Below are positions 45,549 through 52,664 of a stretch of 64,000 bases of DNA, piece after piece; positions within the stretch are counted from its first letter, which is position 1; each line of letters begins with the position of its first letter. The stretch is from positions 62,001 through 126,000 of the forward strand of contig CBFDEM010000029.1 in assembly GCA_965603825.1 (NCBI GenBank), given 5' to 3'. The translations under genes were made by a program, and so were the position numbers. Origin of the DNA: Blepharisma stoltei ATCC 30299 (lineage: Eukaryota; Protista; Ciliophora). The notes beneath the pieces were generated by a model. It did not search any database and was not told where the DNA came from. It saw nothing but the letters and a program-made list of their open reading frames with translations.

Positions 45549-46628
45549 TTAATATTTCATTGAAACTATAGCAGGCCTTACTTGTTTTTTAGACATTTGA
45601 ATCACTTGCTGAGCAGTTCCCATTGCTGAATTAAGTCTTTTTGTGATAATCCCTCTCGTGTTTTTTCTATATTCTCTCGCATTAAATTTAGCAGGCCTTG
45701 CTTTCACACTTGGGCCTATCACTATTGGCTGCTCTTGCTCAATTTTAACTTCTTCGTGCTCTCCTTTTTCTTTTTTCTTCAAAGCACTATCAATTTCTCC
45801 ATATAGCTGTTTATTCGCAGCCAAAACCCTTGCAATTCTTGCTTCTTCATTATCATAATCTTGCAAGTCTTCAATTCTCCTTTCCATTTTTTCAACAATA
45901 CTCAAAGCTACTTTTTTCTTTTCAGCTTCAAGCTCTTTTCTGTAATTTAAATCGATATCTTCAATTCTCTCATTCTCATTTTTCATGTCATATTCAAGTT
46001 TGCAAGCAACATCCTCTAAGTTTGCTAGCTGCTCAGTAAGAACCTTTAGTCTATACTCTTTAGTTTGTTTTATATGATACATTGGATCTTTCCTTAGCAT
46101 TTCAAGCCTCTCTTCTTCCTCTCTAATTAATTTAGCGCTTTCTTCAATATCTCTAAGGACTGAAGGGCTAATAGGTCTTGGTGGCAATTCTGTAAACTGT
46201 TTTTCATCAATATCTACTGATGCTTCAAACTGCTGTGTTGGAACTGGCATTAGAATTCTCCCTTCACTATAATTCACAGCAGGGGTTTGCAATGGAATAT
46301 CTTCAATATCATTGACTTCTAAAAATTGCATATCTTGAAGCTCATCTGCATTAATCCCGATATCCTTTTGATATTGGTAACTTATTAGATCATCTTCCAA
46401 ATTTGTTTGGCATCCAGTTTCATCAGTGTGCTGATTTCTCTTAACTTCTTGTATTTGTGAACGAATCGCAGCCGGCTGTGTGTGCTTTTGGTGAATTGGC
46501 TTCAGTAGCTTAGAAGGGCCTCCAAATTGAAGTAATTTAATAGGCTGAGAAGTTTTCTGTGCTTGTGGAAGCTCATACGCAGGAATCCTCATACTCAAAA
46601 GCCCAAGCTTATTTGCGTCAAAAGACAT
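45549..46628 (-). CDS. Hypothetical coiled-coil protein
   Basis: Long ORF; first ATG gives MSFDANK; no recognised domain. Confidence 0.65.
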   Translation of the reverse strand: MSFDANKLGLLSMRIPAYELPQAQKTSQPIKLLQFGGPSKLLKPIHQKHTQPAAIRSQIQEVKRNQHTDETGCQTNLEDDLISYQYQKDIGINADELQDMQFLEVNDIEDIPLQTPAVNYSEGRILMPVPTQQFEASVDIDEKQFTELPPRPISPSVLRDIEESAKLIREEEERLEMLRKDPMYHIKQTKEYRLKVLTEQLANLEDVACKLEYDMKNENERIEDIDLNYRKELEAEKKKVALSIVEKMERRIEDLQDYDNEEARIARVLAANKQLYGEIDSALKKKEKGEHEEVKIEQEQPIVIGPSVKARPAKFNAREYRKNTRGIITKRLNSAMGTAQQVIQMSKKQVRPAIVSMKY

Positions 46629-46688
46629 AATAAAAATACAATATGATTGCACGTTTAAATTTTGAAAAAACTTGTACAGGATTATAAG

Positions 46689-49394
46689 ATGGCGAAGAAT
46701 AAAGGAAATGCCGAATCGGGAAAAGACAAGAGTGCTTTCTTAAGGAATGGAAAAGTCAACATGCCAGTGGCGAAATATAACGCTTTTTGGACTGAAAAAA
46801 TTCAAATTGGTAACTATATTTTGGGGTTAGTCAAATATCTAATTGATTGTGAGAAGCTCAAGAAAATATCTGGTGTTTCAATGGAGCAGGCATTAGCAAC
46901 CCTTTATTTCCTAGTCATTTCTGAATCATACTCGCCCAGCGATGAAAAATTCCTAGCTTCTTTATCAGAAGCCCGTCAACGCTGGGAAAATCATAGGACT
47001 AATCATCCTACATTAAATTTGATGTTTGATGAAATAATGACATGCGTTTTGAGAATTCCCAATGAAAGAGAAGAAATTATCCCATTGATTATCACACATG
47101 CAACCAAATTCCAGCCTCCAATTAGAGATTTTGAAGATATAAACTACTTGAACTATCTTGGCCAAGAAATTAAAGTTGAAACTCCTCAAGATTTGCAAGT
47201 TCACTTAGGCAGTGGGAGTATTCATCTGTCTCCGAACCCAAAGTTTTCGATACTTGACTGTGGAGAATTGACTATGGTTTATACTTTCTTGAAAAATTAT
47301 ATAAAAACAACGTCACACATGCCTGTGAGTTTTCTTGATATTTTTCATAGAAAAATCCAAGAAATTATCATTTCTGTAAGATCGAGCAACCCAAGAGTTG
47401 CTGAAGCGTCTTTGCTGCCTGTTTTGCATATTTTGGAGCAGCTTATTACAAGGTATCCAATTATGAATTATGAGGCAATTGAATCTTTGATATTGGAAAT
47501 TGATGTTCTTCGAAGGTGGCCTATTCCTTATGGGTCTTCTGCAGATAGACTTGTAGAGCTTTTAAAAGATGAAATGAAATCTCCGGGGAATTCAATGATA
47601 AATAAGCTAAGGGAGGAATTCCCTATGATTGATGCATGCATTCCATTATTTGAAAGCTCTTATGATACCTATCAAAAACAAGAATTCAGACGAGCCAATG
47701 CTTTTGTATTTTTAGATATCAATGAAAGTCCAGAAGTTGGACTCTTTTATAAATTATCATTGCTCAATCGAAAACACAGAGAAGAAAAATTAAGAGATAT
47801 TATTCAAAATGTTGATATGGGAAGGACTATCAATTTCACAGCATTTCAGAGCCATGTTTTACGATTAATGATCATTCTATTTGTCTTTTCCAATCATCAC
47901 GATATTAACATTCAGGATGTTTCTTATTTGTCTGGGTTAAGTCCTGAAAATGTATTTGACTTATATAAGAGAGTGATACTCATTATTGAAAAAGCTGGAG
48001 AAGTTGAAGTTGAGCATGCTAGAAAGCTTCAAGAAGATTTTTTCTTAGAGCTGCTTGTTGAGATGAATAACTTTTCTTGTGATGATTCAAATCCCTTAAC
48101 AACAGCTCTTTTTACTTATTTGAGTAATTTCAGTATATATACTCCACAATTTCCAATTCACACTATCTCGATTATTGACATTTCGCAGATAGATGAGCCA
48201 TTACCAACTGATACTGATGTCACAAATAGGACAGTGGACGAGTCAATTTTTAACCTCCAAGCAGAAAAATCAGTGAATGAGCCTTTGTATGAGGTGTTTC
48301 AAAGAAGCATAAATCCTGATAATGCTTTTCATATGGCTCCTATCAAAATAGTTTTAACAGGCAGCGACCAAATCATTCATAGGTTTTTAAAAAGCTATGT
48401 TAGACTGCTTGAAAGAAAGAATCCAGATGAAATGGACATTCGTATATATATCGTTCCCACGTATGATGTCTATAATACTCTAGCCCAATATTTATCTACC
48501 ATTGACAGCTGATATCTAAGACACATTTATGTTCCATTCGCATTAAGACCTTGGGTACCTAGGCTAGACTCAAAAGAAGCCATAAAACAAATGAAAAAAG
48601 ACCCACAAGCAAAAGATATTATAAGGAGATCGGTTGCACTTGATCCATCTTCAGATGGAGGATTAAGAGAAGACACTCTTCCTTTCATATACTCAGAAGC
48701 TCTGCTTCAAGACTACATTATGGAAGCATCAAGGACTCTTCCAATATCAATTTATCAAGTGAAATGCTATAAAGGGGAAGTCAATGATGCAACTTTACCT
48801 GATATTGTGATACCCTTCTGCCTACACATAAGAATTGGGATCACTGCAGCAATAAGAAGGTTTCAAGAAAAAAATGAAGGATTCAAAGATAAATCCCCAC
48901 AGGATATAATGGAATGCAAACTTTTCAGATACGTCCCTATACAATTGAATATGAGATTGACGCAAATGGATTTATTTGGGATAGAATATGCTACGACTGA
49001 GTCAGCCACAAGAGTTATTTATAATATGAACATTTCCAATGTGCCATGTGAAAACGATAAAACTACTCCTGCAATCCCAAGCGCTGAGTGGCTTGAGTTA
49101 TCTTATATAGAGCCTGAATCAGCTCAGCAAGAAGCAGCATACATGAAAAGGATAAAAAGCAAAAAGACAGGAGACACTCAGGCTAATGTGAATGTGGCTA
49201 TCTCAACGCTTTATTCTTCGTTGCATATTGGGAGTGGGTATATTGTTATGTCAGACAACTCGAGAGGAATGGATATATTAGTTGATGATGTCCTTTATGG
49301 ACCATTTAGTGGCATTTCGATTGAGCCGCTAAAACAGGAGAATGGATCTGTAATGTATTTACCAGCAATGGTATATTTAGAGCCAGAATTATAA
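46689..49394 (+). CDS. Protein with PI3K class IB adaptor (p101/p87, PIK3R5/6)-like motifs, ~901 aa
   Basis: TGA 48510 links the two ORFs. Motifs WPIPYG...EMKSPG, IVLTGSD, IYIVP and LAQYLSTIDS-W-Y. Confidence 0.6.
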
Positions 49395-49521
49395 TTTAAT
49401 TCTACTATTATATTTGCATAATTTATTTTCAGAATAATTCATAAATCTATAGGAAAAGCAAATCTGAAGAAAAATCTTAATTATTCACAAATTTTTGTGT
49501 AAAGCCGCTTAATATAAATAT

Positions 49522-50475
49522 CTAAAGCTTAGGCCATACCAAAGAGAGAATCTGAAAAAGTTCATTTCCAGGAACTTCCATCTTCCTCATATATAGTGCT
49601 ATAGCGCATAATAATCCATACACTCTTCTATACTTTGTCTTTTTAAGTGACCAAGCGAATTTTGCTACTGACGCAGCATCTCTAATATTCAAAACTGTGT
49701 GCTCAATTCCTTGTTTTTTTGCCATCTTACGAGCAACAGCAGCGTAAGAATCTTTCTTTATCGAGGAATCCGAAAGGTTAAAAGGAAACGGAAGCTTGAC
49801 GACATCCAAAACTCCTTTTTGTTCCAAAACTAAAAAGTCATTTAAAGAATGGGATCCAATTTTCCCAAAATCTAAGCAGTCTGAATACTTTTCTCTGATT
49901 TCTTGAATGTTTGGCAAAGCACTCAAAATGCTATCAGTACAAATTCTTCTGTCTTCTGATGGGACTTTTAGAGTGATTCTAAATCTTTCATATAAAACTA
50001 AATATAGCCAAGTCGTAAGAGCTTTTGTGCTTTCGTATTTCTGGTTATTTAGACTTCTGATATTTTCTAAAAATTGAGCTCTTATGTTATCTTTAACCCT
50101 CAATACAAAAGGTTTTCTTGAAAACAATAAAAAGTGGTAGGAAGGGATCAGTCTCACCCTGGGTGGTCCAACTTGTAAGCAGGTCTCACTGTCAACTAGT
50201 ACTGCAACGTGGTCAAAATAAGAATATGCCATTGTCCTTAAAGATGTGTAAGCTCTTCCAGGTGTTTGTGTCTGAATAGCGATTACCATTATAATATCTC
50301 CTGGAAGGAGAGACTTTGCGAGTGAAATTGCAGCTTCTTTTTGGTCTTCAGGAATAGGCTTTTTATAGGACACCAAAAGACTATCAGGTGCCAAAATGCT
50401 GTGGATACTTTCTAGTGTAGCTCTGTGTAGAGTTTACTTAAAAACTGCTTCATTTAGATCTTCCATTTTTCTCAT
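49522..50475 (-). CDS. Permuted papain-like NlpC/P60 (YiiX/C92-like) protein, ~307 aa, 2 introns
   Basis: LLPGDIIM|TQTPG, FDHVAV (His), ICTD (Cys, downstream of His = permuted order); ends WPKL. Confidence 0.65.
50272..50286 (-). other. 15-nt stop-free intron candidate GTAATCGCTATTCAG
   Basis: GT-AG, A at position 10; removal gives PGDIIMTQTPG. Confidence 0.6.
50423..50437 (-). other. 15-nt intron GTAAACTCTACACAG
   Basis: GT-AG, A at position 10; removes an in-frame TAA and links to the upstream ATG. Confidence 0.75.
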
Positions 50476-50903: not shown

Positions 50904-52664
50904 ATGATAAAAATCAACCCCAAAATCTGCAATTCTTTCCTTGGAATGCAATCGATGAAATCATCTTGCGCTTATTCCATATGCCAAAACTCTTCTACAG
51001 ACTATGATACTTGCCCAAAATGCAACTCCACAAGATATTGCTCTCAAAATTGCCTTAGAAAAGATTGGACGGCATCTCATCAATTTACTTGCAGTCAACA
51101 TAAGACTGCTATACAGGACTATATAGAGGATAGAGAGACTAAAATTCTGGGAAAAGGCTCATACGGAGAAGTAAAACTTGTAAAAAACCCAACATCAGGT
51201 CAGTATTTTGCCTTAAAGCAAATAAACAAAGAGCGATTAAAAAGCGATTCTTCTTTATTAGTGATGCTTAGAGAAATAAATATCCATAAAGCTTTAAAGC
51301 ATCCCAATGTAATTCAACTATTCCAGCACTTTGAAGATGATAAAAACGTCTATATTTTATTAGAATATGCTCCGAATGGGTCTTTATTTAAATTAATCAA
51401 AAAGCGCCAAGGCCTTTCCGAAGAAATTGCATGGCATTACTATACGCAAACTTGTGTAGGTCTCAAATACTTGCATGATAACCATATAATTCATCGGGAT
51501 TTAAAGCCAGAAAATCTGCTACTCGATCAATATGGCAATGTAAAAATCTGTGATTTTGGATGGTGCGTGCAGAGTACTGAGCAGAGGCAGACTTTTTGTG
51601 GAACTTTGGACTATATGGCCCCAGAAATGATTTTAGAAAAAGGGCATTCTTTTGAGCTAGATATGTGGGCAATTGGGGTGCTCCTCTATGAGCTATTACA
51701 TGGATATCCACCTTTTCGAGCAGTTAGAGATACTGATAAGTGCCAACAAATTTTGCTACCCAAATTAACTTTTGACCCAAAAATCAGTCCTGAAGCAGCT
51801 GATTTAATTAAAAATTTATTAAGAACAAATCCAGAAGAGCGCTTACAGCTGAATGAAGTGCTAGCACATCCATGGATTGCTAGATACGCTCCTTCCATCA
51901 ATACTAATGTGAATACAAAAGCAATTCATCCTGAGTATGGCCTTGGAGTGATAACCAATATAGAAGGTCTACTATGTACAATATTTTACCATGATAAAAA
52001 TTTCACTCAATATTTAGCTGTTCCTGATATCCCGTATATATTAGAAATACAGCCAAACGATCAAAAAGAAACCCTCCTACAAGAAATAGAGTCCCTAAAA
52101 AGCATTGATTCAGAAGCTTCATCTTTAACTAGAGAAAAAAGGCTTTTACATAGAATCCATAAGTGATGCAAAGCTCCTGTCAAGAGAAAAAATAAATTTG
52201 AAAGGAAATTAAGAAAATCAATTAATCTAAAGGAAAAAAACTTTAAAATAGCTTTGAAATTAGAATTAGAGAGATTTTCAGGGGAAAGCAGAAGCGAAAT
52301 GAGAAGCAGCAATCAAATATCGGACGGCTCATCTGTCATCGATATAAAAGCGTTAAAATTCGTTGATCTAAGAGAACAAAAATCGTCTACGTCTAACAAT
52401 TGTGATGGGAAAACAACTGAAATGACTGGAGACCAAAGCCAAAAAGCCTACCAAAATGATAAAGAGATCAAGGAATTCAATCAAAGCCTCGAGCAGCAAA
52501 GAGAAAGAGAATGCAGAGACTTCAAAAGGTTTCTCAAAACAAATTCAATTGGCTGCCAAACAAGAGATAGCAAAGGAAAGACACCGAATCAGCAAAAATC
52601 TGGAATTACCCACTGGTTCACTGCGATTTTTGGCTGTGTTGAGAGAAGACGTACAAGAGAATAA
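50904..52664 (+). CDS. MYND zinc finger + Aurora-like kinase, ~586 aa
   Basis: CPKCNSTRYCSQNCLRKDWTASHQFTC; REINIH, ICDFGWCV, RQTFCGTLDYMAPEMI; TGA 52164 read through. Confidence 0.85.

Follow-up and report, generated by a model that had tools for sequence, protein, structure and literature searches.

The window analysed here comprises 64,000 nucleotides of the ciliate Blepharisma stoltei ATCC 30299 (assembly GCA_965603825.1, contig CBFDEM010000029.1, positions 62,001 to 126,000, forward strand), and carries at 46689-49394 a gene whose product is almost certainly a distant, full-length homologue of p101 (PIK3R5) and p84/p87 (PIK3R6), the regulatory subunits of class IB phosphoinositide 3-kinase (PI3K), the immune-cell enzyme PI3K-gamma. 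As the best reading of its role, we consider it probable that the protein serves as a non-catalytic regulatory subunit of the ciliate class I PI3Ks, working without G-beta-gamma, with the binding to the kinase being predicted. New here is the p101/p84 architecture, equipped with an N-terminal extension and a structured insert, in a lineage and signalling context where such a subunit is not expected.

Profile and structural evidence for homology

A first-pass annotation, made from the nucleotide sequence, had quoted five motifs in the order of p101 and proposed a p101/p87-like identity on that basis. All five are indeed present in that order, at residues 275-310, 552-573, 584-590, 596-613 and 672-690, and the identity is corroborated by searches at the level of profiles and folds. 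Half-protein, single-sequence searches against the PDB sequences gave chance matches only (a globin and an RNA polymerase III subunit, E~1), and profiles were therefore required. With a profile of nine ciliate sequences, p101 emerged on top in the PDB (7mez_B and 8so9_B, E 0.0014), through three colinear stretches that coincide with the motifs of the annotation. A 55-sequence family profile, which includes the database copy of our protein, P0001, recovers the same two p101 chains at E 3.7e-27, again in three colinear stretches and spanning p101 residues 47-876 of 881, and p84 (8aj8_B) at E 3.9e-15, with the next PDB match at E 0.32. Individually, 31 of these 55 relatives match the Pfam family PI3K_1B_p101 (PF10486) and eight match Pacs-1 (PF10254), and all ten members sampled across clades match PF10486 inside profile positions 42-158, mostly at about 76-147.

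The two Pfam families considered in the annotation behave differently when P0001 is scanned alone. Pacs-1 is found over its cut-off of 25 (35.5 bits, E 7.7e-9, residues 538-722, profile positions 64-213 of 413), whereas PI3K_1B_p101 stays under its cut-off of 23 (16.2 bits, E 0.0023, residues 276-310). Among the eight ciliate sequences scanned, a single one, the orthologue P0004, reaches the PF10486 cut-off (23.6 bits), and several non-ciliate relatives exceed it, with scores of up to 40 bits. The sub-threshold score reflects the limited sensitivity of a model built on vertebrates, and does not speak against homology.

The predicted structure is congruent with the profiles. AlphaFold2, run without templates on an 85-sequence alignment devoid of vertebrate p101 and p84, returned a model with a mean predicted local distance difference test score (pLDDT) of 88.7 and a predicted template modelling score of 0.92. 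Querying the PDB with this model using Foldseek, a comparison that the annotation had suggested, gave the first eight ranks to p84 and seven chains of p101 (E 2e-17 to 6e-12, target-normalised template modelling (TM) score 0.59-0.70), followed by sphingosine kinase 1, acylglycerol kinase, YegS, DgkB and NAD kinases. In the ESM Atlas, the 15 top feature matches were all PF10486 (score 0.91, 193-194 of 256 features shared), and the best match by fold was a p101 cluster (TM 0.54/0.56, 570 residues aligned), with PACS clusters second (TM 0.34/0.48).

Domain architecture and conserved motifs

The three-part p101/p84 architecture is present in the model, namely a helical solenoid, an alpha/beta barrel and, at the C-terminus, a beta-sandwich with a returning tail, and so is the two-domain fold of diacylglycerol and NAD kinases (Table 1). 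In VIA-align, the alignments to p84 and p101 start at model residues 125 and 129, equivalent to chain residues 4 and 11, respectively. The preceding N-terminal extension is conserved in the wider family consensus. Compared to p101 (PDB 7MEZ, 8SO9-8SOE; 15-17% identity), the ciliate protein has an extra extension of about 125 residues, an extra solenoid insert of about 50 residues (lower-confidence, at approximately 145-195), and a folded helical bundle at 350-478 where p101 displays an unresolved linker, 311-512 (bioRxiv 10.1101/2021.06.01.446612). The extension and inserts likewise set it apart from p84/p87 (PDB 8AJ8; 12-14% identity), which the family profile scores below p101. The beta-sandwich is the counterpart of the G-beta-gamma- and membrane-binding domain of p101, and contains two inserted helices, 809-823 and 831-841.

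Table 1. Features of the p101/p84-like gene and protein (window coordinates), and of the PI3K genes elsewhere in the genome (contig coordinates, with positions in the extracted locus in brackets).
Feature	Residues	Coordinates	Strand	Basis and remarks
p101/p84-like coding sequence, complete	1-901	46689..49394	+	Translation; identical 901-aa database protein P0001; contigs of four runs
N-terminal helical extension	1-125	46689..47063	+	Helices 16-120 in model; without counterpart in solved p101/p84
Helical solenoid, equivalent to p101/p84 N-terminal helical domain	126-310	47064..47618	+	VIA; HMM alignment with p101 47-152; PF10486
Motif RRWPIPYG...E...PG	275-310	47511..47618	+	Top N-terminal conservation; aligns to p101 118-152; presumed PI3K contact
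Central alpha/beta domain, diacylglycerol-kinase-like fold	311-680	47619..48728	+	
Helical insert inside alpha/beta domain	350-478	47736..48122	+	Ten-residue blocks, mean pLDDT 84-97
Vestigial GGDG-type motif IKIVLTGSDQIIHRFLKSY	552-570	48342..48398	+	Aligns to p101 VVVFGSDRI
Motif IRIYIVP...NTLAQYLSTIDSWYLRHIY	584-614	48438..48530	+	Common to p101 and PACS
In-frame TGA read as Trp	608	48510..48512	+	W in 9/9 ciliate sequences; codon same in transcript-like contigs
C-terminal beta-sandwich	681-883	48729..49337	+	HMM alignment with p101 601-876; model strands 682-880
C-terminal tail, strand L-P-x-x-[TV]-[FY] returning to alpha/beta domain	884-901	49338..49391	+	Aligns to p101 LPIMTF 871-876
Class I-type PI3K gene (Ras-binding domain (RBD), C2, PI3Ka, kinase)		Contig C18 571500-580500 (L019 2782-6573)	-	1,264 codons between stops, 8 TGA, first Met codon 100
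Class I-type PI3K gene (weak RBD, 21 bits; PI3Ka, kinase)		Contig C36 643500-652500 (L021 3376-6846)	-	1,157 codons, 10 TGA
Shorter Vps34-like gene (C2, PI3Ka, kinase, no RBD)		Contig C1 (L022 3373-5826)	+	

Family-wide conservation, as assessed in the 85 aligned members, is focused in five motifs. The first, RRWPIPYG...E...PG, comprises the loop that joins two model helices, 261-276 and 281-297, together with the following helix, and retains W277 and P278 in 75 members each, P280 in all 85, G282 in 61, E295 in 84 and G300 in 78. At the vestigial GGDG site, G558 is kept in 83; the next residue, 559, is G (50 members) or S (21), and residue 560 D (51) or N (18). The IRIYIVP region harbors two invariant residues, P590 and D606, alongside N596 (57), W608 (81), Y609 (82), R611 (70) and H612 (60). 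In the beta-sandwich, a D866-[GD] motif is maintained (D866 in 84, G867 in 68), and the tail follows the pattern P892-x-x-T-F-F-P (P892 in 67, T at position 895 in 63 and F at position 896 in 71). The second, third and fourth of these motifs resemble degenerate forms of three diacylglycerol-kinase signatures, GGDG, P-x-G-T-G-N-D-x-A and DGE.

A literal GGDG is found in seven relatives. In P0038, a relative of 860 residues, the matches to PF10486 (E 1.5e-10) and to DAGK_cat (27.2 vs 23.6 bits, residues 517-575) both clear their cut-offs, the latter at the G-G-D strand; P0038 carries the literal GGDG and may bind nucleotide. P0038 is, as far as its sequence goes, a bridge from p101-type subunits to diacylglycerol kinases.

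Candidate kinase partners and alternative roles

Two PI3K genes of class I type and a single one resembling Vps34 are present in the genome; a domain scan of the segments between their TGA codons detected C2 in the C18 gene and not in the C36 gene. The co-occurrence with class I PI3Ks raised by the annotation is found within this genome. For Tetrahymena and Paramecium, Leondaritis et al. (2013) reported three and five class I PI3Ks, respectively, with a regulatory subunit not identifiable (PMC3823935). In mammals, p101 and p84 contact p110-gamma chiefly by two loops of their N-terminal helices, alpha3-alpha4 and alpha5-alpha6 (PMC10068899). On p110-gamma, both subunits engage C2 together with its flanking linkers, with the p101 C-terminus touching C2. 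In our alignment, WPIPYG (277-282) corresponds to p101 W119-C124, and the motif through E295 to p101 118-141. If helices are counted from the point where equivalence to p101 begins, 261-276 and 281-297 would be alpha5 and alpha6, and this count together with the described mammalian interface puts the WPxPYG loop at the putative p110 contact. The best-conserved surface element of the family therefore appears to sit at the presumed contact to the catalytic subunit.

Based on these considerations, we propose a mechanism in which the p101-like protein would have no catalytic role, and would instead bind one or both of the class I-type catalytic subunits from the C18 and C36 genes. Binding would be achieved via the W-P-x-P-[YF]-G solenoid loop and the C-terminal tail, modelled on p101/p84-p110-gamma, and would stabilise the kinase. 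The beta-sandwich may then help to position the complex on membranes upon a membrane-bound activator, possibly a small GTPase and/or lipids, in conjunction with Ras input through the RBD of the kinase itself, in a p84-like mode. The activator is probably not G-beta-gamma, since neither G-alpha nor G-gamma was detected in the genome, and the defining G-beta-gamma input of p101 is accordingly unlikely in the ciliate. Coupling to G-beta-gamma is strong with p101 and weak with p84. Specifically, no G-alpha was found in the genome at the Pfam cut-off (best 35.6 vs 48.8 bits). The 21 weak G-alpha matches all cover only profile positions of about 159-264, in open frames of 69-214 residues (mostly about 130-210), and look like small GTPases.

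Separately, in the environmental eukaryotic relative P0087 (980 residues), the alpha/beta and beta-sandwich half of the family is fused behind a complete GTPase domain of the Ras family (residues 10-171; Pfam Ras, E 1.2e-51). As a Rosetta-stone type of sign, this single sequence hints at small-GTPase input to the family.

Several points weigh against a regulatory subunit of class I PI3Ks. The heterodimer is a prediction from sequence and model, and the WPxPYG loop is assigned to alpha5-alpha6 by helix counting rather than coordinates. Identity to p101 and p84 in the structural alignments is low, 14-18%, and with P0001 alone PF10486 falls short of its cut-off (16.2 vs 23 bits) and Pacs-1 surpasses its own (35.5 vs 25). 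Co-occurrence with class I PI3Ks across eukaryotes is based on a dozen or so named taxa and the literature. Regarding the G proteins, the search that found no G-gamma in the genome was without a positive control, and G-beta is inseparable from other WD40 proteins.

The p101 fold may have been re-used in ciliates as a scaffold for another partner, such as another lipid kinase, a small-GTPase module or a cytoskeletal complex. We regard this as unlikely, although the very deep divergence from p101/p84 in identity, the N-terminal extension and structured insert that both are missing there, the GTPase fusion of P0087 and the G-protein context not found in the genome would all suit such a scaffold. 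On the other hand, the top-conserved surface motif across clades appears to fall in the region that binds p110-gamma in mammals, and class I-type PI3Ks without a known partner occur in the same genome as well as in other ciliates.

A PACS-type sorting adaptor in membrane traffic, independent of PI3K and linking cargo tails or coat components via a PACS-like C-terminal region, appears decidedly improbable to us. The annotation had pointed out a PACS resemblance of the central motifs, and Pacs-1 is indeed the sole Pfam family that P0001 matches over a curated cut-off. Pacs-1 is shared with the eight relatives mentioned above, the Stentor orthologue is automatically named for the PACS 1/2 C-terminal domain, and PACS clusters come second by fold in the ESM Atlas. 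PACS-1 and PACS-2 have in common with the ciliate protein the alpha/beta core, with its G-x-D strand and a P...N.LA.YL..D..Y motif. However, the match covers only about 150 of the 413 profile positions, and the full-length fold match is to p101/p84, not PACS. PACS proteins have an N-terminal C2-like cargo- or lipid-binding domain and no p101-type solenoid, whereas P0001 lacks a match to C2_PACS_N (PF25332) at E<=1, and its N-terminal 310 residues are predicted to be all-helical save a few short strands. The PACS resemblance pointed out in the annotation is real, but is confined to the diacylglycerol-kinase-like core. An active, or at any rate nucleotide-binding, member of the diacylglycerol/sphingosine-kinase superfamily that phosphorylates a lipid itself is possible among the GGDG-retaining relatives, yet very improbable for the ciliate protein. 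Here, TGSD (557-560) takes the place of GGDG and DD (866-867) that of DG, DAGK_cat yields no match in P0001 even at E<=1, and the alpha/beta domain is broken by the 130-residue helical insert. Such degenerate motifs and the large helical additions, N-terminal and within the alpha/beta domain, distinguish it from diacylglycerol and sphingosine kinases, YegS and NAD kinase, and the authors of the p101 structure likewise found the active-site residues not to be conserved. A non-catalytic subunit of the class I PI3Ks stays our preferred reading.

The gene in its genome and the family across eukaryotes

The gene consists of 901 codons and a terminal TAA in one uninterrupted reading frame; it is intron-free, and single-copy in the genome (41.46 Mb, 64 contigs). 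P0001 is identical to the translated product, with W at the position of the only in-frame TGA. The annotation had read this codon as tryptophan, and the alignment concurs, the position being W in all nine ciliate sequences and in 81 of the 85 members of the wider family. In other genes of the same genome, internal 'stops' are TGA only; TGA is thus tryptophan in this genome, as deduced from the invariant alignment and these TGA-only interruptions. Dividing the protein at the TGA made the Pfam matches weaker, and P0001 was used in its place. Hidden small in-frame introns were also considered and rejected, as genome and transcript-like contigs are colinear; in addition, the alignment reveals no ciliate-specific insertion at odds with the orthologues. 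Of the orthologues with a name, that of Stentor coeruleus is the closest (43% identity), and a partial sequence without a name reaches 81%.

Four public runs of one study contain the stretch, with gene-sized contigs that span 46692-49421 without joints, insertions or deletions. Of these, a 2,736-nucleotide contig spans the same interval with the TGA unaltered, and both flanking genes are on contigs of their own. This suggests that the gene is expressed, as an unspliced mRNA with very short untranslated regions. Weighing against this, that the four runs are RNA is a guess of the tool, backed only by the gene-sized contigs and the poly-T end of a neighbour. The latter, a loose end, lies at 49465, where the downstream minus-strand gene has its 3' end, and represents a probable poly(A) site. 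Within the gene, at window position 46911, C in the assembly is replaced by T in run X3, at full contig depth, which may reflect a strain or allele difference. The flanking genes, 45549-46652 and 49522-50394, both on the minus strand, lack a Pfam match at E<=0.001, and further on, a 420-residue open reading frame (50904-52166, plus strand) encodes a MYND zinc finger at the N-terminus (E 1.2e-6) along with a complete protein kinase domain (E 5e-78). As these genes are unrelated to the p101-like gene, no operon-style inference was drawn, operons not being expected in ciliates in any case.

An exhaustive hidden Markov model search of 1.84 billion cluster representatives identified 455 relatives at E<=1e-3, 245 of which at E<=1e-10. 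A word-indexed search with the 55-sequence alignment recovered just the close ciliate sequences, and none from vertebrates or PACS. Named members stem from the ciliates Stentor coeruleus, Tetrahymena malaccensis and Protocruzia adherens, from the chlorarachniophyte Norrisiella (Rhizaria), the stramenopiles Triparma and Mucochytrium and the heterolobosean Willaertia magna, as well as from the amoebozoan Soliformovum and from Palpitomonas (Cryptista). Apart from the Stentor entry ('PACS 1/2 C-terminal domain-containing protein', an automatic name), all are annotated as hypothetical or uncharacterised. This spread agrees with the ancient adaptor proposed in the annotation. In a quick FastTree analysis of 85 sequences, with many long branches and used for no other grouping, the window protein groups with the Protocruzia and Tetrahymena members and ten rows without names in a 13-row clade (support 99), which is compatible with vertical descent.

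The sole phylogenetic study of PI3K regulatory subunits that we found, Philippon et al. (2015), places the appearance of p87 and p101 very late, in Vertebrata, and also asks about the regulation of class IB-type catalytic subunits elsewhere (PMC4617754). Similarly, the authors of the p101 structure remark on a 'lack of homologous proteins'. Our literature search yielded no paper on non-vertebrate or protist p101 homologues or on a p101-PACS link, and the preprint on the PACS1-WDR37 structure does not mention p101. Judged from the sequences recovered here, the p101/p84-type family is pan-eukaryotic with an origin long before the vertebrates, in contradiction to PMC4617754. More tentatively, with confidence somewhat short of even, we suggest that a p101/p84-type rather than a p85-type protein was the ancestral regulatory partner of class I PI3Ks, already in the last eukaryotic common ancestor. 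It would have arisen from a diacylglycerol- or sphingosine-kinase-like lipid kinase after catalysis was lost, coupling the kinase first to membranes or small GTPases, and later to G-beta-gamma. In ciliates, heteroloboseans, stramenopiles and probably amoebozoans, the orphan class I PI3Ks would then all be heterodimers with this subunit.

Aggregated, these findings date the p101/p84 fold back as far as early eukaryotes, and its descent from diacylglycerol-kinase-like enzymes gains sequence-level support. The core common to the PACS C-terminal region may also aid the interpretation of the disease proteins PACS1 and PACS2. For the protists, the family, with its 455 representatives, is a concrete candidate for the missing class I PI3K subunit, in the tractable Tetrahymena, Paramecium and Stentor, and it offers a natural experiment on the role of a p101/p84-type subunit where heterotrimeric G proteins are undetected.

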